DNA of 64,000 bases from Macrostomum lignano (taxonomy: Eukaryota), in contig NIVC01003335.1 in NCBI GenBank assembly GCA_002269645.1, positions 39,647 through 103,646 on the forward strand, written 5' to 3'. The position numbers were made by a program, and so were the translations under genes. Under the pieces are notes generated by a model. The model was not told where the DNA came from. It saw nothing but the letters and a program-made list of their open reading frames with translations, and made no database searches. Numbering within the stretch: position 1 is the stretch's first letter; the number at the start of each line of letters is the position of its first letter. Positions 2,233-58,500 of the stretch are shown in pieces.

Positions 2233-2791
2233 GTCTCGGACTAGCTCAAACCTGCCTTTGGCCTAGTTTACACGCATAACAAAATTATGCATGAAAAATG
2301 TCAGTTATGGTCGAGAAAAGAAAAACAGTCTTAAAGACAGAAAAATATTGAATATATAATTTTTTTAATCATCATTCTTTCCACAATAACTTGCCTTGCA
2401 TCACGTCAGCTTTATATTAGTAGAGCAACCCAACAACGAAGCCTTAGAGACAAGAACAAACCATATTTGGGTGCCAAATTTGGGACAAAGATGTGCATTG
2501 CGGATTCCACAAACCCCGAAGATATTCCTCTCAAAGTTAAATATTTTTTGCAAGAGACAAAGGCCGCATCATCAAATAGTTCTAATTCTCTGTTGTTTTC
2601 TTTTCAAAAAATATTTTGTCAGATAATTTTATCACTACAAAATCATGAAGTTTACGTAGACTTATATTACGGCAGCTTTGCTCGAGCTGAATCAACTAAC
2701 AATGATTCCTTCGTGCCAAAAACCGATACACCCTCAGTTTCTGTTTTAAGTTAGCCAACGAACCCGGTTGCGCAATTGAATACGCAACTTT

Positions 2792-5700
2792 TCACAGCTT
2801 GTCCAGGAACCGGTCCAGCGGCGGGATGCCCTCCTGCAGGCCCTTGCGCTTGCGCGTGTCTATCACGATCTGGCTGGGCTTGGTGCCGGCGGTCAGCGGG
2901 TCGCCAGGCATCACCTGCCAATGGTCGAACACGCACTGGGGGAAGCCTGGCCGCCTGTGGCCTGGCGCAGATCCGAGGTGAAGCCGAAGCTCTCGTTAAC
3001 TGGCAGGTGGGCCTTCACGATAAACATCGGGGTGCCGGTCACCTGTTCACGGGATTGATTGGCGCTTGCTGTTAGTGACTGTTGCAATAATGGCATGAAT
3101 TTAGGGTCAACTCCTGTTACTATCCGCCATTAAATCCGGATATAAGGGCGATTCCCATGGAATATAAGGGCGATTCCCATGGAATATAAGGGCGATTCCC
3201 ATGGAATATAAGGGCGATTCCTATGGAATATAAGGGCGATTCCCATGGAATATAAGGGCGATTCGCATGGAATATAAGGGCGATTCCCATGGAATATAAG
3301 GGCGATTCCCATGGAATATAAGGGCGATTCCTATGGAATATAAGGGCGATTCCTGTAGGAATATAAGGGAAATTCCCATGGGATGTAAGGGCGATTCCTG
3401 TAGGAATATAAGGGAAATTCCCATGGAATATAAAGGCGATTCCTGTAGGAATATAAGGGAGATTCCCATGGGATGTAAGGGCGATTCCCATGGGATATAA
3501 GGGCGATTCCCATGAAATATAAGGGTGATTCCTGTAGGGATATAAGGGCGAATTTCATGGGAAATAAGGGCCATTGTGGCAGGTTTCCATACGAACCCTT
3601 GAAGATAGCTAACAAGAGCTGTTTTTATTAACCTGCTCCTCGGAGTACACCACACCGCGACGACGGTTCAGCACGCCGTAGATGCCGCCGACGGCGTTCT
3701 CGGGGCACTGGATCTCACACAGATACACCGGCTCCAGCAGGGCCGGCTCAGCGGTCAGCACGGCGGCGTAGAAGCAGCGCCGAGCAGTCGGGATAATCTG
3801 GCCGCCGCCGCGATGGATAGCGTCGGTGTGCAGCGTTACGTCGCAGATGTCGAAGCGACAGCCGCGCATGTTTTCGTCGCACATGACGCCCTCCTTGGTG
3901 GCCCACTGAAATGCGGCCACAACGCTGTCCTTGATCTCGGCCAGGTACTGTACACCCTTGGTGACGTCGACAACCAGGTTAGCGCCGTTGGTGTCCGGGC
4001 CAAAGCACCAGATCTTGCGAGCCTCGGTCACGTCCCAGTTGTAGGTGTCGGCAAGGATGCGGCCGCGCTCTTTGGCGTCCTGCCTAGGCGCGATTTTGCC
4101 ATCGTCGATGTCTTTGGAAAGATCCTCGTCTAGCGGACGAGCCTTCATGTACAGCCGGTTGTGCTTGTTGGGCGACTTGGACAGCACCGTCTGCAGTGTA
4201 ATATTGTAATTCAGTATCAACAACCGGATTGTGAAATTGGCCAAATAGTACTCTATGCACTGTGCCTTTCTAGGTTACTGGTCTCTGATCTCATTGTCAG
4301 ACGGTGAAGACAGGCTTCTAGTCTGAGGACTCTGGTGCTAGGGAAACTCCTATTGCTAATTAAAGGATAACACACCTGGGTCTGCTTGAGCAATTAACGT
4401 CGTTTTAAGGGCTAACCACAAAAGCACACTGAAGTGTACATGCCAAGCGATAATGGACAGTAATGCCTCTCGCCGGTTTGCCCGACAATGCCACTTAAAG
4501 TGCGCCAGGATGCACGCAGCCTCTCTGACTCTAGCAAAGTAAATAACAAACCTGGTTGCTCTCGTTGGTAACAGTCTCGCGGTACGACACCACGGGATCG
4601 CCAGTCTTAATGGGGATCTGGGCGTGATCCTCCTCCAGATCCTTCAGACAGATCTCCAGATGCAGCTCGCCGGCTCCAGCGATGATGTGCTCGCCAGACT
4701 CCTCATTGTAGATCTGCACCATGGGGTCGGACTTGGCCAGGCGCTTCAGACCCTCGACCAGCTTCGGCAGGTCGGACGGATTCTTGCAGTCAACGGCGAC
4801 GCGAACGACAGGCGACACGCTGAACTTCATGACGCGCATGTTGTGCGCAGCGGCGTAGGTGGTGATGGTGCCGGTCTTCACCAGGAACTGGTCGACGCCA
4901 ACCAGGCCGCAGATGTTGCCACACGGCACGTCCTCGATAGGCTCGGTGTAGCGGCCCATCATGAGGATGGTGCGCTGGATGCTCTTCTCAAACAGGTCGT
5001 CTTTCTTGCCCGGCGCGAAGTTGGGGCCCATGATTCGCACCTTGGTGGCGCTCACAACTCCGGAGAACACCCGACCGAAGGCGTAGAATCGACCCTTGTC
5101 GGAGGTCGGCACCATCTTCGAGATGTACATCATGAGCGGCGCTTTCGGATCGCAGGTCTTGATGCCGATGGCGGCCTCGTCATCGTGGGGTCCCTCGTAC
5201 AGCAGCTCCATGCGGTAGCGCTGGGAGGTCACGGGAGACGGCAGGTGGATGGCAATCATCTGCAGCAGAGTGTCGCCAGCTGGGAGCCACTTGCGCATCA
5301 TCACTTTAAGCAGCTGTTTGCCGGTCAGCTCGCGCTCCTCAGCGTCCAGCTTGATGTTGAGCTTTTCGGCAAGCTTCAGGCCCTCCTCGATCGGCTGGTC
5401 CATCACAACGTCAAACATCTGTAGAATGAATCGGTGAATGTACAATCGATGGTACAGTATATAGCAAGGACAATGCTGAGAAATAAATGTGACAATAAAA
5501 ACAAAAGTCTTCCACCTGCATCAGAGAACTGAATCCTCAATAAGATATTTTCAGCCTGGGGCAGTATAAGGTCATCATGTGCAGGTAAAAAATACTTTTT
5601 AGATGTTATAGATAAAAGCGCTGACTGGTTTACAGCTCTGGTCAGACAAACTGAATCATCAATTGCAGCATTTAATTGATTGCATTAGCCTGGGGCAGTA

Positions 5701-8700
5701 TAAGGTCATCACGCATGAGCTGATAAACCAACAGGCGACTAAAAAAACGCATCAATATCTTACCTGGTAGATTGGGTTCAGCACAAACTGGATGAAGCCG
5801 CGAACGCACTTGTCGCTCTCCTGAGTCTTCACCCATTTCCTCGTCTCAGTGTTGTAGAAGTTGTCGCCCCACAGACGCTTCATCAGCTTCTCCGGCTCGA
5901 TCTTGAACTTGGAGGCGTAGATCTCGGCGAACTGCTTCAGCGTGAAGGCCCAAGCGTGCAGGCCCGAGCCGAAGCCGACGGTGCCCTTCTCCGGCGACAC
6001 GAAGATGTTGCCCATCGGGCCGCCCTCCTCGCCGAACTGGGCGATGATCACGTTGATGTTCTCAACGACTCGCTGGAACTGCTGGTACAGATCCTCCTTG
6101 CCCTTCTTGAGCGTCAGCAGCGAGCAGTCCATCTTGTTCATGAACAGCACCGGCTTGATGCGCTCGGCGATGGCCTGCCGAAGCACCGTCTCCGTCTGCA
6201 CGCACACGCCAGAGTTGCAGTCCACGACGACAAGGGCGCCGTCGGTGACGCGCAGAGCGGCGGTCACCTGTTCGTCATAATTAGGCAATAATAATAGCCG
6301 ATTACTAAAACAATATTCTCTTCAAGACTACCGCAAAAAAAACAGAAAACTTCACCTGCATCAGAGAACTGAATCCTCAATAAAAATATTTTTCAGCCTG
6401 GGGCAGTATAAGGTCATCATGTGCAGGTAACAATAATAATTAATAATTTTTCAGCTGGGTGAACTGAAGCAATGCAGAGTTAAGTGTCTTGCTCAAGGAC
6501 ACAAATTGTTTCCAGTGGAAACGGGAATCGAACCCCCGACCTTTAAGTCGTGAGTCCGACGCTTTGAACACTAGGCTACAACACCTATGTGCAGGTAATT
6601 GTGTTGAACTAAGAGTTCAAATAAGGTCATTTACTTGTACAAATTAGTCGAATAGTGGCTTTGTGTACAGGAGACTCTCCTCTATTTGTTGTCCAAAAGG
6701 TCACCTGACAACAACTTACCTCAGAGCTGAAGTCCACGTGGCCAGGCGAGTCGATCAGGTTGATCAGAAAGCCGGACTCGTCCGTTCCATCGCTGCGCTT
6801 GGACACCTCCTGCAGGGTCTTGACAAACTTCACATCGGCCTCAGTCAGCTCGTAGTACATGCTAACAGCCGTAGACTTGATGGTAATGCAGCGCTCCTGC
6901 TCGTCCTTGCGCGTGTCGGTGAACCTGGTCTCGCCAGCTCTGGCCGAGGCGATAATGCCAGCCTTGGAGAGAAGAGAGTCGGTCAGGGTCGACTTGCCGT
7001 GGTCCACGTGAGCAATGACAGACATGTTGCGGATGTTCCGCTTGTTGTCCATCATGCCACGGATTTGATTAACAGTGAAGTTCACCTAAAATATTTTAGT
7101 AAAGTGATGGGGCCATGTTAATTACCAAGAACCATAATTTAAAGCGGTGCAAAATCATAGAGTTATCATAATTTTGTCAGTCCATCTAGTAGCTGAAAGC
7201 CCACATGGTTTTTAGGGCAAGATTCAAAATTATCATCATTAATGAGATTTATGAAACAGCATAAATAAAGAATTTCATTACAAACATTTTTAACAAACAT
7301 CAAAAAAGTCAAAAAGTAAGTTGCACATCCAGTGTAAATTAGGGGGTTGCATGCTTCTAAATGAAATTTTCCTGAATACCTAGAAGCAGTTTCTTATTTT
7401 AATTCTTTCTTTAATCTTTATGTAGTAGTCTGGGGCTTTGCTTTTAAATTAAACAAGTGTAAGATGTAGCATTTTTAAATGGAATCATGCTGCATATTTT
7501 ATGTGACCAAGTTAAGGTGTTCTATATAATTTAGTGAATATGCTACTATGCATTATTCCAGTTTATTAATTTTAATAACAATATAGCAATAAAAAACTAG
7601 TTTTTATGTCAAATGGTGCAATTGACTAGTTGACTAGCTTTTAATCTTTTATTGCATATGCTTTATTTCCAGTTTTAGTTTTGCCATTATTGTGGATAGC
7701 ATCTGATATGGATTGCCCTTAATACTATGTGCAATCTAGTGCACTAGTGTGGGAAAAAGGTATCTGGTATAGTTTATACATTGGCTGCAAAAATGTGGCA
7801 GTGTTCTTTCATTTAATTTCATTAGTTTACTTACTAGATTTGCTATCTTTGTTTAATATTTGTGTCTTAAAATTTGATGAATATTTCTACACTTTCCTTG
7901 ATAGGCATCTTATGAGGATCCTATATGTTTGTCTAAATATTCTGCAACAAATTCAAAATGATCTTATACAAAAACAATATGATAGTTTGAATATTTTCCA
8001 AAAATAATCACCTAAACTATATATACACCTATTAATATTTTGACAATTGTAGATCTATACGAAACATAATCTTAACAAAATAGTTAGTGTTTTGCTGTAA
8101 GGAGGGTCCATGTACCATAGCTGTAGCCATAAGCAAAACTATGGCTTATTCCAATTCTCCATATTCCATAGCCATAGGGACCCCAATATTACCATATTCC
8201 AATAGTTCCCATAGCCATAGTTTTAACAAAAAGTCTAGAAAACAAAATATTTTGAATCAATAAGATAACCTAGTGCTTAAAAAACTGCAAATTAAGTTAC
8301 AAAATAAAAGAAACACTTGATTGACTTTGTAAGATTATATTTTATCTATTTTTCAGAGCGACAATACTAAATTGTTACTGAAAGTACTAATGCTGAACTT
8401 TTTCACATAAAAAAATAGAATTTGCTAGTGTTTGTTTGTACTTTATTAGGTATATTTTAAAAGTTTCAAAGTTGATAATACAGTTTACTAAAAGTATATT
8501 TGTTTTATTCTACCTGTTTCTAATATTTTTTCAATTTTTAAACAGTAACTATGGCTATGGCAATCTACAGAATCTGACAACAACTACCATATTTCCGTAT
8601 TTGTAGCCATAAGAGCAGCTAGCTACTGTAGGCGTATCTGTAGCTGCTGTAGGCACCTATTTTACCGTAATTGCCATAGGATCCCGTAGCTATGGCTACT

Positions 8701-11700
8701 GCGGAACACTAAAAATAATTGTCTATAAATATATTCTATAAAGTAATTTTGGTCTAGGATAGAATCTTTGCATGGCTAATTTAGAACTTAAAATTGTGTA
8801 CTTTTTTAAAGAATGTTTATACATTAACATGTGCAAATATTTCTTATATTGCAATACTTAAAGACTTCTTAAAGTTGTAACAATAAAGGACCTTTTATGG
8901 TTTGTCATTTTGACAATAAAATATATTTTTGCCCAAAGCCAATTGCTTTTACATGCAATAAAATCTGTTTTACATGTTACAAGTGCCAGAGTTTAGATAG
9001 TTTATATATATGCCAGAAATTCCAACATACAAAAGACCTGGAGTACACCATTGGCATACAACTTGGTGTACAAAAGGGCCTAATGTGCCTTTTTGGTATA
9101 TAGCTTGGCATATAGAGATTGTTAAGATAGCACATTGGACCAAGTTTGATTTGTCCCAACCAATCCCAGCATTGGTACAAGTGTAATATACAACCTTTTA
9201 AAATGAAATCATACTTCAAGTTTTTAGCAATGACTCAAGTGCACAAGTTTGTCTAATATGTATACACAAGTTTATCAAAAATATGCATGCAAGTTTTTTG
9301 CAATACATACAGAATGCATCTTGGATTTTGTACAAAAATTCTTTCTTTGCCTCCTATCACATAAAAAATTATCAACTCATATAACATAGTCTAGATCATG
9401 CAAGGTGCATACCTGAACAAAAATTGAATTATAAATGCCCGCCTGGCTGTCGTAATCTGGTTTTCATCTGGCCTCGTCCGGTTTAACCCGTTTTAGGGGG
9501 GTGTTTTCGGACCAAAAAGATGTTGATCCGGTTTTGATCCAGTTTTTGTTTCTGGACCAAAAACTGGGCCAAAATCCGGAGTAAAGCCGGATGAAAGAGT
9601 TCTCTTTGTGACTCTTTTCATCCAGTTTTTGATCCGGTTGACTTGTCGATTAAACTCTAACAATCAGCCAGATTGAAAACCAGATGAAAACTGGAAGAAA
9701 GCATATCTTGGTCCGGAATTTTGTCCGGTTTTACATCCTGTCCATTGACCCACCAAAAGCCAGATAAAGACCAATGCACAAAATGGAAGAAGTCCAGATG
9801 AAATACTGAGTTCGGAAAGGGGACTTGGATTTTTTATGAGTAAGTAATTTGCAAGACTGCATTGAGTTGTTATTAGGTAAAGAAATATGTAATGAGTGAC
9901 CAATGTGACCACTGCTGTGTTATTTGTGTTTTTCTGTGCTTTTTTAAAATAGCTGTGTTATTGTGTTTTTTAAGAAGTCATCTTTTTTCTGTGTTAAACT
10001 TAAATAAACAGCCCAATTTAGCTTTTTCTTGTGTTTTTATATTTTCTACTTGGGTGGAAAGGAACTGGCAATAGCAAGGAAGGCCACTAGCCTAGACAAA
10101 TAGGGTAATACCGTCTCAATCTATCCCTACAATGTATGATTGATGATGATATTGATTTAAAATGAAAATGTGCTGCTTGAATTAGCTGGAATGAATTAAA
10201 ACAAGAATTTCTATTCAGACAATAAATAAGCATTGGCAAAATTGCTATAGTGAATGTTTTTCACTTTTTCTTCATTTAAGTAGCTACTGTGTTTTTTCTT
10301 TCTAGCTGGGTTATTTCTCACATTTTTGTTGCTGGTCACACTGTGAGTGACATAAATTGTGAAGTACTTGTAAGTATTGAATTATAGAGCTGTATCACTA
10401 AAGATGGTATAAAAGCCATACATTTTGTGGCAAAAGCCGTAGTAATTTTGTGCCATATGTTATCCTAATTTCAATTTAAATACACTGTTGTCTATGTTGC
10501 CTTTGGCCTATGTTTAATGGAATTTTCCAAAGTTTATTGCTTATGCTTTGTGATTCAATAACTAATTATGTTTAGTTGTCTATAGTGTATCTTTCTTATC
10601 AGTCCAGCAATCAGATCAAAGACACAATAATGAAAAAGAAGGGAGTATATTATATTATCAGTTGAAGGAACAAAGACATGCTGAATATGCACGATGTACC
10701 TATTGCCTGCAATCTATACACCATGGTGGGTATTTTAGAACAGTAACTTTACTTAACATTACTAACGTGTACAATAATCACTGTTCTGCAGATAGGTAAT
10801 ATCAACCTTGGGTCTACATTTCTAGTTTTCTGTTGACATTTTGTTTCACTCCTAGTATGGAAAAATGTATATGTCGCTATTTTTTCTGTTGTCCCCAATT
10901 TTATAAGTGAGTTTTTTTTCTGCGCCTATTTCTTCGTGTAGCTGGAAGTTTTTCTTCTGTGAAATTTCTAGTTTTTCTGCCTAGTACTAATTTGTAGCCG
11001 CCTAAAAGATAGTGTGTCATCTCATTCTCCATTTCTCCTGATTTGTCCACCCAATATGAGGTTTTGCCATTCTATTTTTGACTCAAGCATGTCTTGTGTA
11101 TTTGCATTTTTAGCGACATGCAACTTTAACAATTATCTTTGGTTTCATACATGCGCAACTTCCAAAATTTGGTCGGCTGTGCAACTTAGTTTTAACAAAA
11201 ATGCGACATGGTTTTTTGGCCAAAAATGCGACTTACATGTAAAAAAACCAACGCAACTTTGGGTTAACGGCAAGAGTAACTATGACTGTCTTATTAAAGA
11301 AAAATGCCTTGTCATCTACTTAGTACTACTTTTGTATTTATTTGGGTGGGCATTTTTGCGACTTACATTGGTTGGCCGCCAAATCGGTCGGCCGACTATT
11401 GCGCATGTATGTTCGGTTTCAATATTCGGTACAAAAAAACCAATGCAACTTTGGGTTAACAGCAAGAGTAACTATGACTCTCTTATTAAGGAAAAATGCC
11501 TTGTCATCTACTTAGTACTACTTTTGTATTTATTCGGGTGGGCATTTTTGCGACTTACATTGGTTGGCCGCCAAATCGGTCAGCCGACTATTGCGCATGT
11601 ATCTTCGGTTTCAATATATTCAGCTTCCACTACTCTATCTAGCAAAGTGAATTAAAGGTTGGCCACCCTCTGTGCAAGTGCAATATACCTTGCTTTCTTT

Positions 11701-15203: not shown

Positions 15204-18200
15204 ATGTCTGGCTTTTATCTAAAGAATCGTCTCTTAGAAGTACTTGTCGTAGTTGGCGCCGATGACAGCAGCAGTCTCCGGCCTCGGCCAGGCGGCGGCG
15301 CTGGCAGCGGTCCAAACAAGCTGCTGACCAGCATCGCCTACGAGCCTTGTTTCCTAGCAACTGTCAACGAATCTAAGGCGGTTTTTCCCAACAAGTTAGT
15401 ATTTGTGTCTTTAGCGTGCTTTTCCATAGATTATTGATCGTCAGCTTTAATAATTCTGAACTTCCTAATTGTCAATAGCTTGAAAACAGGGGGTTGTAGG
15501 TTGTAGCCTAGTGGTTAGAGCGTCGGACTCACGACTAAAAGGTCGGGGGTTCGATTCTCGACCCACTCAGAACAATTTGTGTCCTGGAGCAAGACACTTA
15601 ACTCTGCATTGCTTCAGTTCACCCAGCGGTAAAATGGGTGCCAGCACTAGCTCGGGTAATTGAGGGTGCGTGGCGACCCCCAGTCCTTGGACTGAACAGC
15701 CGTACGCAGCCTTCAGATGCGCCGCGCAATAGCTGCGGCTGAGCTGTCGGTTGCACATCTGTCTATTTGTGTAGGTATAATCAATTATTATTATTAATAT
15801 TGAAACAACAATAGCTCGGACGAAACACATAACTACAATGAAAACCGGCCATCACTTGAAATTCGCAAAATTTCCAACTGCCCTCTAACTTACATGCAGT
15901 TGTCCTATTGTCAACGAGGTTGTCTATTAAAGAAAGCAATTGTTTCTCTTTCTAATCAATTTACAGCCACCCGCCAGTGGCTCCGTTCTACCCGCTGCCA
16001 GCTTTCCACGCGGGCTCGAGGGCCTCTCGCTCCCTCGCCCAGGGTCGGCTGGTTGAGCAGCAGCATCAGCAGCCGCCTGCCCAGACTCCCACCATGATAG
16101 AGGAGGAGGATGAAGAGGAAGAAGACAGCGAGGCGCCGGTTAGATGAAAGAGAGCTTTTTCATAATTGATTTTTAGCTACTTAAACTTCAGGAAGATAAT
16201 CAGGAAGATATTGGCCTGAGGAGGGTTGGGGGGAATTAATTTGGGACTTGTTGTGCACCGAACTTGGCCCTGGGAGGTGGGGTTGTCGCACGATTTACAT
16301 CCAACCCATAAGAGCCTACACCCCAAGGCACAGAGAGTGTACATGCCTGACGATTAGCAAGTCGGGCCGCTGTACACCCCTATGCGAGTGTGTACCTGTG
16401 TACGTATCCGCTGCGTGCTCGTGGGTTCGCTCAACGGGCACGATTGCTTTCTTCCTTGCTGCCTTCGGGTCGATGTCGTCTTTGATTTCTCAGAAACTCA
16501 GCTAAGCCCTAGTTCCGTTTTTTGATAGAAGCAACGTTTATATTCATTGCGAATTTACTGCGGCTCGCTCTAATCCTTCGAGCAGCCTTATTTAGCGAGC
16601 CTTGGTGTCGGAGGCGGCAGCAGCAGCGGCGGCGGCGGTGGTGGCGGCCGTGGGGGTCGTCGCCTGGGCATCGTCCAGTCCCTGCTTCCGTCGTCTTCGC
16701 CGCGGCAGTCAATCTCGGCGGCATCTAGTAGGCAGGCTCGTCGGCCGAGCTTTGCCCGAGCGAATGCTGACGTTGTTAAGTCGCTGATGTCTGACGAGGA
16801 CCAGCAGCAGCAGACTCTGGCTCGACTGATGCGTCGACGACCAACGCTCACCGGTAGCAGCGTCGGCGGCGGCGGCATCGGCGGCGGCCTGTCTGGTGTT
16901 GGCGGAGCCGACGGTAGACGAATGTCGTCTGTGCGCAACATTGCGGTGACAAAGCACGAGAAGAAGGTGGCTGGCGAGGTGGCGGAAGGACTGCCGGATC
17001 TCTGCTACCCGGAAGGCTTGCAGGTTTGTACTTTTAAGCATAATGGTGCGTTTGTGTGTTTTGAATTCTACTGTTCTCCAATGCCCATCGATGCCGTATG
17101 TCTAGAATTATCTCGCTTTTTGTCTTGTATTTGGTCACAAAGTCTTGAATTTGTCACCCTGTCTTGAATTGGTCACCGTGTCTTGAATTGGTCACCGTGT
17201 CTTGAATTTGTCACCCTGTCTTGAATTGGTCACTGTGTCTTGAATTGGTCACCGTGTCTTGAATTGGTCACCGTGTCTTGAATTGGTCAGTGTCTTGAAT
17301 TGGTCAGTGTCTTGAATTGGTCAGTGTCTTGAATTGGTCAGTGTCTTGAATTGGTCAGTGTCTTGAATTGGTCAGTGTCTTGAATTGGTCAGTGTCTTGA
17401 ATTGGTCAGTGTCTTGAATTGGTCAGTGTCTTGAATTGGTCAGTGTCTTGAATTGGTCAGTGTCTTGAATTGGTCAGTGTCTTGAATTGGTCAGTGTCTT
17501 GAATTGGTCAGTGTCTTGAATTGGTCAGTGTCTTGAATTGGTCACTTGAATTGGTCAGTGTCTTGAATTGGTCAGTGTCTTGAATTGGTCAGTGTCTTGA
17601 ATTGGTCACTGTGTCTTGAATTGGTCAGTGTCTTGAATTGGTCAGTGTCTTGAATTGGTCAGTGTCTTGAATTGGTCAGTGTCTTGAATTGGTCACTGTC
17701 ACCCTGTCTTAAATTGGTCACCGTGTCTTGAATTGGTCACCCTGTCTTGAATTTGTCACCCTGTCTGTCTTGAATTGGTCACCCACCGTGAATCTTGAAA
17801 TTGGTCACTATGTCTTGAATTGGTCACCGTGTCTTGAATTGGTCACCGTGTCTTGAATTGGTCACCGTGCTTTAGATAACTAAGTTTTCACCTCCCATCT
17901 GCAGATCAGTGCCCGCCCCTTGGAAGCGAGGATCGATTATCATGTGTTGACGCACATATCTGGCGACCGACTCTACGCCACCCTGCTGACATTCGGTCGG
18001 CAGTACCGCGCCAGACGGCAACCCAGCCTGGCTAATGCTGGCCCCAACAGCGATGAGGACGCCGAAGAGGATGCAGACGATGACAGCTTGGTGCAGCTTC
18101 GCTTAGAGGAAGACTGTCGAGACGATGACGTGGATGGACTGAATGATGAGGTGCGCTTGTTTAACATCATTGGGTAGCCCGGATATAGGTTTTTAAGCCT

Positions 18201-26924: not shown

Positions 26925-27237
26925 GGGGATTGTAGCCTAGTGGTTAGAGCGTCGGACTCACGACTAAAAGGTCGGGGGTTCGATTCTCGACCCCACTCGG
27001 AACAATTTGTGTCCTCTGAGCAAGACGCTTGACTCTACATTGCTTCAGTTCACTCAGCTGTAAAATGGGTGCCAGCATTAGCTGGGGTAATTGAGGCTGT
27101 GTTTGTGGCAACCCCCAAGTCCTTGGACTGAACAGCCGTACGCAGCCTTCAGATGGGCCGCGCAATAGCTGCGGCTGAGCTGTCGGTTGCACATCTGCCG
27201 CAATTAGAGCAGGTGTAATCAATGATTATTATTTATT
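26925..27237 (+). mobile_element. tRNA-derived SINE family 1, full length
   Basis: Same head, body and tail as the 15489 copy. Confidence 0.9.
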
Positions 27238-55554: not shown

Positions 55555-58500
55555 CCATTAGGTCTGCTGTCTAATGTCTGTGTTACAGATGTTTCTACAT
55601 ATATACGCGTAATGCCTCTCTGTCTGTGGAGGTCTGCCTACACACGAATCAAATATCGAAGTCCAATTGTTTGCAAATTCTTAAACAGCGCCGCCTCCCC
55701 TCCCAACCGCAGGTTCCCTTCCTATTCAAGTACGCAGTGGACGCAGTCAATGACGCCAACGCGGCCATAGGTTCCGCTGTAGGCGATGGTGCACCTGTTG
55801 TGGCCGCCGCGTTGTTCTCAGTTACTGGCCTTATCGCGTCCTACGGCGTTGCCAGGGCAACCGCTAGCGGTTTTAACGAACTCCGTAATGCGGTATTCGC
55901 CCGCGTTGCTCAGGACTCGATTCGCCGTGTAGCCAAAACTGTATTCCTGCACCTGCACAGCCTTGATTTGCAGTTTCATCTGAATAGGCAGACTGGGGCT
56001 CTGTCCAGGGCTATTGACCGGGGCACCAGGTGAGAATCGCTCCACACCATGAGAATCGCCCCACATCAAGAGACCCCACACCATGAGAATCGCCCCACAT
56101 CAAGCGACCCCACACCATGAGAATTGCCCCACATCAAGAGACCCCACACCATGAGAATCGCCCCACACCATGAGAATCGCCCCACACCATGAGAATCGCC
56201 CCCATTAAGAAACCCCACACCATGAGAATCGCCCCACACATCAAGAAACCCAACACCATGAGAATCCCTCCACGCATCAAGAAACCCCACACCATGAGTA
56301 TCGCCCCACACCATGAGAATCGCCCCACATCAAGAGACCCCACACCATGAGAATCGCCCCACATCAAGAGACCCCACACCATGAGAATCGCCCCACATCA
56401 AGAGACCCCACACCATGAGATTCGCCCCCCATCAAGAAACCCCACACCATGAGATTCGCCCCCCATCAAGAAACCCCACACCATGAGATTCGCCCCCATC
56501 AAGAAACCCCACACCATGAGATTCGCCCCCATCAAGAAACCCCACACCATGAGATTCGCCCCCCATCAAGAAACCCCACACCATGAGATTCGCCCCCATC
56601 AAGAAACCCCACACCATGAGAGTTGTCCCCCATTAAGAAACCCTGGGGTTGTAGCCTAGTGGTTAAAGCGTCGCACCCACGACTTGAAGGTCGGGGGTTC
56701 GATTCCCGATCCAACTGTAACAATTTGTGTCCTTGAGCAAGACACTTAACTCTGCATTGCTTCAGTTCACCCAGCTGTAAAATGGGTGCCAGCATTAGCT
56801 GGGGCAATTGAGGCTGTGTGTGGTGACCCCCCAGTCCTTGGACTGAACAGCCGTACGCAGCCTTCAGATGCGCGGTGCAATAGCTGCGGCTGAGCTGTCG
56901 GTTGCACATCTGGCCCAATTGGGGCAGGTGTAATCAATTATTAATATTATAAATAAACCCCACACCATGAGAATCGCCAATCACACAACCCCGCAGAGGC
57001 ATCAACTACATACTAAATGCAATAGTATTTAACGTGGCGCCAACCGCCCTGGAGGTGTCCCTAGTAACCGGCATTCTGTGGTACAAGTGCGGCCCAGCCT
57101 ACGCCTGGGTGGCCATCGCCAGCATCGCCTCCTACGCGGCTTTCACATTCAGCTTCACCCAATGGCGCACGAAATTTCGTCAGCAGATGAACAAGGCGGA
57201 TAATTTGGCTGGCAATCACGCTATTGATTCGTTAATTAATTATGAGACTGTTAAGTATTTTAATAATGAGCGCTTTGAGGCCGACGAATACGACCGATTG
57301 TTAAAGGTAAGTCTTTATTGGTTGGCAGCTAGTTCTACCTGGGGAGATAGACTTGCAGCCATATCTACTCAGGTAGACAGACTCACAGCCATATCTACTC
57401 AGGTAGACAGACTCACAGCCATATCTACTCAGGTAGATAGATAGACTCGCAGCCATATCTACTCAGGTAGACAGACTCACAGCCATATCTACTCAGGTAG
57501 ACAGACTCACAGCCATATCTACTCAGGTAGACAGACTCACAGCCATATCTACTCAGGTAGACAGACTCACAGCCATATCTACTCAGGTAGATAGACAGAC
57601 TCACAGCCATATCTACTCAGGTAGATAGACAGACTCACAGCCATATCTACTCAGGTAGACAGACTCACAGCCATATCTACTCAGGTAGACAGACTCACAG
57701 CCATATCTACTCATGTAGACAGACTCACAGCCATATCTACTCAGGTAGATAGATAGACTCGCAGCCATATCTACTCAGGTAGACAGACTCACAGCCATAT
57801 CTACTCAGGTAGACAGACTCACAGCCATATCTACTACAGCCATATCTACTCAGGTAGACAGACTCACAGCCATATCTACTCATGTAGACAGACTCACAGC
57901 CATATCTACTCATGTAGACAGACTCACAGCCATATCTACCCAGTCCCGTCATGGATCACCAATCCAAATGCCATATCCGCAGGACTACGAACGCGCATCG
58001 CTCCGCATTCAGACCAGCCTAGCGGCGCTGAACTGGGGCCAGAGCGCCATATTCAGCGCCGGATTAACAGCTGTAATGCTACTAGCGGCCAACGACATAG
58101 CAGCCGGCAGTCTGACAATAGGCGATCTGGTTATGGTTAACGGCCTATTGTTTCAATTAACAATACCATTGAACTTTCTTGGCTCAGTTTATCGGGATAT
58201 GCGCCAAGCTTTAGTTGATATGCACGCCATGTTCAGCCTGTTGCAATTGCGCGGCCAGTCTGATTATGATGCTGCAGATGAGGCTAAGCCGAAACTGAAT
58301 GCCAGGCCAGATCGAGCCGAAGTGGAATTTCGCGATGTTAACTTTGGCTACGTTCCGGGTAGTGACATTTTATCCGGCTTGAGCTTCACTGTGCCCTCCG
58401 GCAAGAAGGTGGCTTTAGTTGGCGGCAGTGGTAGCGGCAAGTCAACTATAGTGCGACTATTGTACCGCTTCTTTGAGGCCCAATCGGGTTCTATTCTCAT

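Follow-up and report, generated by a model that had tools for sequence, protein, structure and literature searches.

A stretch of 64,000 nucleotides (nt) from the flatworm Macrostomum lignano (assembly GCA_002269645.1, contig NIVC01003335.1, positions 39,647 to 103,646 of the forward strand; hereafter the window, with positions counted from its first letter) carries on its minus strand a gene for the translocation factor eEF2. Two introns of this gene hold three repeated elements, here called copies A, B and C, which resemble small nucleolar RNAs (snoRNAs) of the box C/D class and, within that class, the U31/snR67 type, whose target is a G in the P-loop of large-subunit (LSU) ribosomal RNA (rRNA). 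All three elements are sense-oriented relative to eEF2. The gene and the parts of each element are as follows.

2792-7085, minus strand: host gene eEF2, spliced reading frame rebuilt from GC-rich blocks
7085-6720, 6267-5764, 5418-4552, 4190-3633 and 3042-2792, minus strand: eEF2 coding exons, from splice junctions and translation
6268-6719, minus strand: eEF2 intron 2, 452 nt, GT-AG, hosting the fragment of a tRNA-derived short interspersed element (SINE) and copy C
5419-5763, minus strand: eEF2 intron 3, 345 nt, GT-AG, hosting copies B and A
5514-5586, minus strand: candidate snoRNA copy A, 73 nt, read 5586 to 5514
ACCUGCA / UGCAGGU, minus strand: closing stem of copy A, 7 bp
5578-5572, minus strand: box C of copy A, AUGAUGA
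5571-5555, minus strand: guide of copy A, CCUUAUACUGCCCCAGG
5554-5551, minus strand: box D' of copy A, CUGA
5539-5534, minus strand: box C' of copy A, UGAGGA
5524-5521, minus strand: box D of copy A, CUGA
5633-5722, minus strand: candidate snoRNA copy B, 90 nt, read 5722 to 5633
CAGCUC / GAGCUG, minus strand: closing stem of copy B, 6 bp, unrelated in sequence to the stem of A and C
5712-5706, minus strand: box C of copy B, GUGAUGA
5705-5689, minus strand: guide of copy B, the 17 nt after box C being the same as in A and C
5688-5685, minus strand: box D' of copy B, degenerate CUAA
Between D' and C' of copy B, minus strand: 23-nt spacer that can form a 7-bp hairpin, AUCAAUU / AAUUGAU
5661-5656, minus strand: box C' of copy B, canonical UGAUGA, followed by UUCAGUUUGU
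5645-5642, minus strand: box D of copy B, CUGA
6354-6428, minus strand: candidate snoRNA copy C, 75 nt, read 6428 to 6354
6420-6414, 6413-6397, 6396-6393, 6379-6374 and 6364-6361, minus strand: box C AUGAUGA, guide CCUUAUACUGCCCCAGG, D' CUGA, C' UGAGGA and box D CUGA of copy C, in that order

An exact 25-mer, TGATGACCTTATACTGCCCCAGGCT, is common to A, B and C and occurs exactly three times in the window, while 100 dinucleotide-preserving shuffles contained no match to it, even with up to three mismatches allowed. Every copy has a box C (RUGAUGA) near its 5' end and a box D (CUGA) near its 3' end, joined by a short terminal stem, as well as internal D' and C' boxes whose degeneracy (CUAA in B, UGAGGA in A and C) is within the range usual for the class. 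Copies A and C are near-identical and share one layout, which reads from 5' to 3' as ACCUGCA, one C, AUGAUGA, CCUUAUACUGCCCCAGG, CUGA, a 12-13-nt A/U spacer, UGAGGA, UUCAGUUCU, CUGA and UGCAGGU; the D'-C' spacer is the sole difference between the two elements. An earlier note, made from the letters of this DNA, had placed three minus-strand copies at exactly these coordinates and had given copy B a different stem and spacer with the same guide, as is found here. Its account of box C, the shared guide, the terminal CTGA and a stem of 6-7 bp also stands, and only the D'/C' pair has to be corrected, D' of copy B being CUAA and C' of copies A and C being UGAGGA. The closing stem is kept in the centroid fold of every copy, including a paralogous one described below, where it has 8 bp with a bulge. 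The folding-energy z-scores of the copies are unremarkable, which is the expectation for box C/D RNAs.

The identity of the host, and with it the intronic position of the elements, was likewise proposed before and is now established by the rebuilt splice structure and by a host protein 98% identical to M. lignano eEF2 (PAA78828.1). All four introns that separate the five exons are GT-AG, and the first four exons are in phase 0 with lengths divisible by three; the last exon has a 1-bp deletion. Copy A ends 95 nt and copy C 86 nt upstream of its own 3' splice site, in agreement with the ~85-95 nt given previously and within the distance of about 100 nt that is typical of sense-intronic box C/D snoRNAs. 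The same gene structure confirms that two of the elements, B and A, lie within one 345-nt intron (5763-5419), where a spacer of 46 nt separates them.

The guide pairs with the eukaryotic LSU P-loop sequence ACUGGGGCGGUA over 11 bp, of which ten are Watson-Crick pairs and one is G-U. For a survey of possible targets, environmental DNA containing the P-loop was fetched; four contigs were confirmed by Rfam as eukaryotic LSU, and three of these are complete ribosomal DNA (rDNA) units with small-subunit (SSU), 5.8S and LSU genes. When the SSU, 5.8S and LSU of the three complete units were scanned for uninterrupted duplexes covering the fifth guide position, ACUGGGGCGGUA was the best match in 3/3 units and the only match common to all three. 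The fifth-nucleotide rule picks the second G of the P-loop sequence CUGGGGCGG, which starts at 2248 in E. coli 23S rRNA, so that the second G is G2251. Both the duplex scan and this position thus bear out the site selection implied by the earlier D'+5 prediction, according to which the second G of the P-loop would be 2'-O-methylated. The elements therefore carry what is characteristic of box C/D guides, namely at least 10 nt next to D' that show complementarity to rRNA and put their fifth nucleotide opposite the target (the duplex being one with the rDNA of other eukaryotes), and also the functional hallmark of SNORD31, U31 and snR67, a D' guide on the P-loop that selects the second G of CUGGGGCGG. 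This G, G2251 in E. coli, pairs with C75 of the P-site tRNA.

Other readings of the pairing were considered and set aside. An A in the rRNA opposite the guide U is disfavored, as G stands there in all 124 environmental LSU matches, which makes a G-U pair likelier; the G-U pair in the duplex between guide and P-loop is probably real. A second guide next to box D was rejected: the interval from C' to D measures just 9-10 nt, falls in a register that varies from version to version and has no target common to the three rDNA units. The A-loop sequence GAGCUGGGUUUAGA makes a weak target for a box D guide, since the pairing is mostly G-U and takes in nucleotides of the C' box. The copies are thus predicted to be single-guide snoRNAs.

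The same assembly holds six eEF2 loci, which fall into two groups; M. lignano is known to be a hidden polyploid (PMC10468722). The first group comprises the window itself (L010), L012 and L009, which are 99.3-100% identical, with C, B and A unchanged in all three, and which are alleles or assembly duplicates. The second group (L001, L008 and L011) represents a diverged paralogous type, with exons 88-96% identical to those of the window and with differences at 87 of 368 four-fold degenerate sites (23.6%, a Jukes-Cantor distance of 0.28). In these diverged loci intron 2 measures 58 nt and has no snoRNA, that is, no copy C, and intron 3 has one intact 84-nt copy, the counterpart of A (for example, L001 10053-10136). 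Of its aligned positions, 70/73 are identical to the window. No change is seen over the 28 nt of box C, guide and D', in C' and the six bases that follow it, or in box D; the copy differs in the D'-C' spacer, in a few bases immediately preceding box D and in the stem's 3' half. At the rate seen at four-fold sites, the probability of 28 unchanged sites is about 5e-4. Outside this intact copy, blastn detected no intronic similarity, and in a global alignment of the window with the diverged type the flanking intron gave no more matches than shuffled sequence. Because the element was kept in a diverged locus while the intron around it lost its similarity, this pattern of conservation indicates purifying selection on the putative snoRNA. 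The earlier suggestion that the guide is under selection is hence borne out, and more strongly than it was made.

The paralogous loci also tell something about the age of the copies. At the same relative place as copy B, the paralogue has a relic with AUGAUCA for box C, CUGG for box D, an intact C' and a guide truncated after UAUACUG. A covariance model using sequence only, based on six versions of the element and run on the window and 11 loci (about 200 kb), matched these B relics weakly (E about 2-3) and found no further copies beyond them. The presence of the relic in the paralogous loci means that the pair of B and A is older than the split of the two locus types. With its damaged box C, guide and box D, the relic is the picture of unconstrained decay, B having decayed where it was not maintained; in the lineage of the window, the intact boxes and guide of B are best explained by selection. 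Over 101 nt, which begin ~2 nt ahead of the closing stem (with the TT of a shared TTACCTGCACAT) and extend into about 21 nt of 3' flank, copies A and C have 91% identity, and since the identity includes the flank, C is a recent copy of A together with that flank. The closing stems of A and C, of B and of the paralogous copy are in different registers owing to insertions and deletions; each is a stem of its own, and the differences between them do not amount to compensatory changes in aligned columns.

A run of six bases following C' (UUCAGU, or GAUUCAGU with the last two bases of C') is invariant in all four distinct versions.

5533-5528, 5655-5650 and 6373-6368, minus strand in the window, and L001 about 10109-10116: invariant hexamer UUCAGU after C'

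The D' CUGAA of A and C, unlike the CUAAU of copy B, is complementary to UUCAG. The scan of the three rDNA units found no conserved rRNA target for this stretch.

Searches against Rfam gave a more qualified picture. Nothing in the whole window was found at gathering scores, and neither SNORD31 (RF00089) nor snoU31b (RF01285) reached its threshold. Below threshold, SNORD31 and snoU31b both match, the former also on copy B with 19.6 bits. The best Rfam scores belong to snoZ17 (29.7 bits) and snoR38 (29.6 bits) on copy A and to snoR38 (32.3 bits) on copy C; these families were rejected, as their alignments fit only the boxes and the stem, with the guide gapped or mismatched. The search for SNORD31/snR67 that the earlier note had proposed, counting the lack of any Rfam hit against its own reading, therefore yielded matches to the expected families without reaching a gathering score. 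In E-value mode, nothing was found on the rest of the gene (2500-5450), nor on 8.5 kb of L001, where the larger search space put the snoRNA present there above E=1. With only sub-threshold matches, the family assignment rests on guide and architecture. The alignments to SNORD31 and snoU31b cover only the boxes, guide and stem, and snoRNAs diverge quickly outside boxes and guide. The resemblance of the guide to SNORD31, which had been noticed before, holds: the Rfam consensus UACCGCCCCAGUCUGA stands opposite UACUGCCCCAGGCUGA of the flatworm RNA, in the same register relative to D'.

How far the flatworm elements correspond to known systems can be judged part by part. The same universally conserved G is also modified by protein-only methyltransferases, RlmB in E. 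coli and Pet56/MRM1 in mitochondria, which, unlike the elements described here, are stand-alone enzymes without a guide RNA. Among guide RNAs, SNORD31 (U31) is likewise an intron-encoded box C/D RNA with its guide upstream of D', both having the core GCCCCAG, one unpaired nucleotide and CUGA in the same register, and its target is the second G of CUGGGGCGGUA in the LSU P-loop (human 28S Gm4166; PMC13507652). It differs in having one copy per intron, whereas B and A share an intron in the flatworm, in having a C where the flatworm guide has the U that forms the G-U pair, and in showing no detectable similarity outside boxes and guide. Yeast snR67 directs the same conserved P-loop methylation, at Gm2619, equivalent to E. 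coli Gm2251 (PMC11121408), which for the flatworm is a prediction; snR67 has another genomic setting and a second guide, for Um2724, whereas the stretch before box D in the flatworm has no conserved target. Plant U31b (snoU31b) resembles copy B in its guide core, CGCCCCAG, in the degeneracy of the D' after it (CUUA in the plant family) and in a longer D'-C' spacer, and of the Rfam families it matches that copy best (23.0 bits). That match is below the gathering score of 37, and U31b is a plant family with another host context.

The host gene also sets the flatworm elements apart. Human SNORD31 lies within the non-coding gene SNHG1, or UHG (PMC13507652), whereas the flatworm host is eEF2. An eEF2 gene is in itself an established vertebrate snoRNA host, as human EEF2 harbors SNORD37, which, however, targets 28S A3697 and not the P-loop (PMC3766210); in Rfam's E-value mode, no SNORD37-like match was found in the eEF2 gene of the window. 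We compared the eEF2 loci of six other invertebrates, namely the trematodes Fasciolopsis and Calicophoron, the leech Helobdella, the snail Pomacea, the polychaete Paralvinella and the coral Acropora. The guide cores CGCCCCAG and TGCCCCAG are absent within the eEF2 gene in 6/6 of them, and these loci gave neither a gathering-score match to Rfam nor a match to the covariance model of the Macrostomum copies. The hosting by eEF2 thus looks local to Macrostomum within this sample, consistent with the lineage-specific host arrangement that had been suggested. In animals there is usually one snoRNA per intron (PMC11028025), a rule from which B and A depart; intronic snoRNA clusters are known in rice and Drosophila (PMC2780460).

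Taken together, the three elements are most probably intron-encoded box C/D snoRNAs of M. lignano that guide methylation of the P-loop G and belong to the U31/snR67 type. Their anatomy, their host gene, their conservation under selection and the specificity of their complementarity are matters of observation; their expression, the assembly of ribonucleoprotein particles (snoRNPs) and the methylation itself we infer by analogy with the established box C/D pathway, from which the following mechanism is taken. The snoRNAs would be transcribed within the eEF2 pre-mRNA, and Snu13/15.5K, Nop56, Nop58 and fibrillarin would assemble co-transcriptionally on the kink-turn that boxes C and D make with the closing stem. 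Splicing and debranching, followed by exonuclease trimming up to the bound proteins, would then release RNAs of about 73-90 nt. Just upstream of D', the 11 nt UACUGCCCCAG are predicted to pair with LSU CUGGGGCGGUA in the P-loop of helix 80, so that fibrillarin would 2'-O-methylate the nucleotide opposite the fifth guide position from D', the second G (E. coli G2251, yeast G2619, human G4166). As regards history, B and A may both have been present in an ancestral intron 3. B would then have decayed in one paralogous lineage of eEF2, and in the lineage of the window A may have been copied, with about 21-25 nt of its 3' flank, into intron 2 to give C, at whose 5' edge a SINE would have been inserted later.

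Several points weigh against the interpretation of the elements as snoRNAs of this type. The best SNORD31 score is 23.8 bits (E=0.016), on copy C, against a cut-off of 40, and snoU31b reaches 23.0 on copy B against 37. The duplex contains one G-U pair and was checked on the rRNA of other eukaryotes rather than on M. lignano 28S. Copy B, the upstream member of the intron pair, lies 214 nt from the 3' splice site and its D' is degenerate (CUAA), while A and C have an imperfect C' (UGAGGA). In addition, L009, L010 and L012 are so nearly identical that they provide no independent evidence. A different reading is that the elements are not snoRNAs at all but fragments of an intronic repeat or mobile element with a chance likeness to box C/D RNAs, or else a cis-acting element of eEF2 splicing. 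That the elements are repeated, that a SINE adjoins copy C and that Rfam gives no gathering-score match would all suit such an origin. Against it, no copies occur outside eEF2 introns in the window or the fetched loci, conservation tracks exactly what a box C/D RNA needs to function, with boxes, guide and closing stem retained and the spacers variable, and in rRNA the guide has, in the correct register, a single target that is phylogenetically universal; we regard this origin as very improbable.

Other alternatives accept snoRNAs and concern the number of copies that work and the form in which they are released. It might be that only A works, with B, C or both being redundant young duplicates or in decay, so that the shared guide reflects recent duplication in the case of C and chance survival in that of B. 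Three copies with one guide are redundant by definition, C is young, being 91% identical to A with its flank included, and B combines a degenerate D' and a position far from the 3' splice site with decay in the paralogous locus, where it was thus dispensable. On the other hand, B predates the split of the locus types, which differ at 24% of four-fold sites, and yet it retains a perfect box C, guide, C', box D, stem and internal hairpin; its D' is also matched by the plant U31b consensus, which is degenerate as well (CUUA). On balance, a sole working copy A seems unlikely, although of the alternatives it has the most to be said for it. More improbable still is the release of B and A as one species of ~209 nt resembling a small nucleolar long non-coding RNA (sno-lncRNA), in which a snoRNA at each end protects the 46-nt spacer because exonucleases stop at the outer snoRNP borders. 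Two box C/D units only 46 nt apart in one 345-nt intron would permit this. However, intronic clusters in rice and Drosophila yield separate snoRNAs (PMC2780460), and there is no sign in the sequence that the spacer is retained. Such a species would moreover be compatible with P-loop-guiding snoRNAs in eEF2 introns and would not replace them.

The surroundings of the elements include several repeats, of which the SINE in intron 2 is closest.

6446-6585, minus strand: tRNA-derived SINE in eEF2 intron 2
56645-56783, 15500-15635 and 26930-27066, plus strand: other SINE copies, 88-91% identical

A tRNA gene at 6585-6513 was considered and rejected in favor of the SINE head, given that ARAGORN called no tRNA in the window, that the Rfam tRNA model scores 24.9 bits on the SINE, below threshold, and that similar copies exist. 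The SINE in intron 2 is without the 3' part of the three longer copies, and its A/T-rich tail ends 17 nt before copy C. An exact 12-nt direct repeat, TTACCTGCACAT, at 6598-6587 and 6430-6419 (minus strand) brackets the SINE fragment with its A/T tail, and the downstream unit of the repeat coincides with the 5' stem of copy C and the beginning of its box C. The repeat looks like a target-site duplication left by a SINE that would have inserted at the 5' edge of the snoRNA, leaving the latter intact. Elsewhere, a 22-bp tandem repeat of about 20 copies (3140-3575) fills most of the last eEF2 intron and makes long spurious open reading frames, and a 43-bp satellite of about 25 copies (1135-2235) lies just downstream of eEF2. 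Both arrays vary in length between near-identical loci.

The host gene has further peculiarities at its two ends. In the last exon (3042-2792, minus strand), a 1-bp deletion at about 2945 (CAGGC-TTCCCCCAG in the window, CAGGCCTTCCCCCAG in the near-identical L009 and L012) shifts the frame and removes conserved C-terminal sequence of eEF2. It probably explains why the gene model is an 806-aa "partial" one, and it reflects either a mistake of the PacBio-based assembly or a dead allele. At the other end, the first eEF2 exon in the window begins GTG AAC (V-N-F-T-V) behind an acceptor, ttttag/GTGAAC at 7085-7091 (minus strand), and similarity to exon 1 of the paralogue revealed no cis ATG exon upstream of 7085. 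The spliced leader of M. lignano ends ...TTGCATG (PMC8629364), and trans-splicing to this acceptor would give eEF2 an in-frame AUG. In the paralogous loci, by contrast, a cis exon that ends in AAAGATG/GTGAGT lies about 2.5-2.9 kb upstream (L008, L001). Intron 3 of these loci (L001 9895-9900; also L008 and L011) has a GC donor, CAG/GCAAGT, in place of the GT of the window.

Hardly any flatworm snoRNAs have been annotated. In Schistosoma, U3 was the only known snoRNA for which a homology survey found an unambiguous counterpart (PMC2770079), and in the literature searched we found no paper that annotates snoRNAs of Macrostomum. Judging from its sequence, the locus would supply, for a flatworm model, a functional counterpart of U31/snR67 that can be assigned with confidence. 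It also presents snoRNA turnover in compact form, with duplication inside an intron, copying to another intron, decay and the survival of a SINE insertion all in one host gene and two paralogous loci. Nothing changes in what is known of the workings of box C/D snoRNAs, and a specialist would not be surprised; ours is a sound but ordinary annotation. A more far-reaching idea, which we consider doubtful, concerns intron 3: the usual exonuclease-only pathway would make it the source of a ~209-nt RNA, capped by a snoRNP at either end, from a housekeeping translation gene, whereas separate snoRNAs would imply an endonucleolytic pathway like that of plants or Drosophila. If this is true, either outcome of B-A processing would be a first description for flatworm snoRNA biogenesis, and the guide for a P-site tRNA contact, co-transcribed with the translocation factor, would be co-regulated with it. 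In any case, the locus may be used as a seed for finding other flatworm snoRNAs, and it predicts a testable methylation of the P-loop G.

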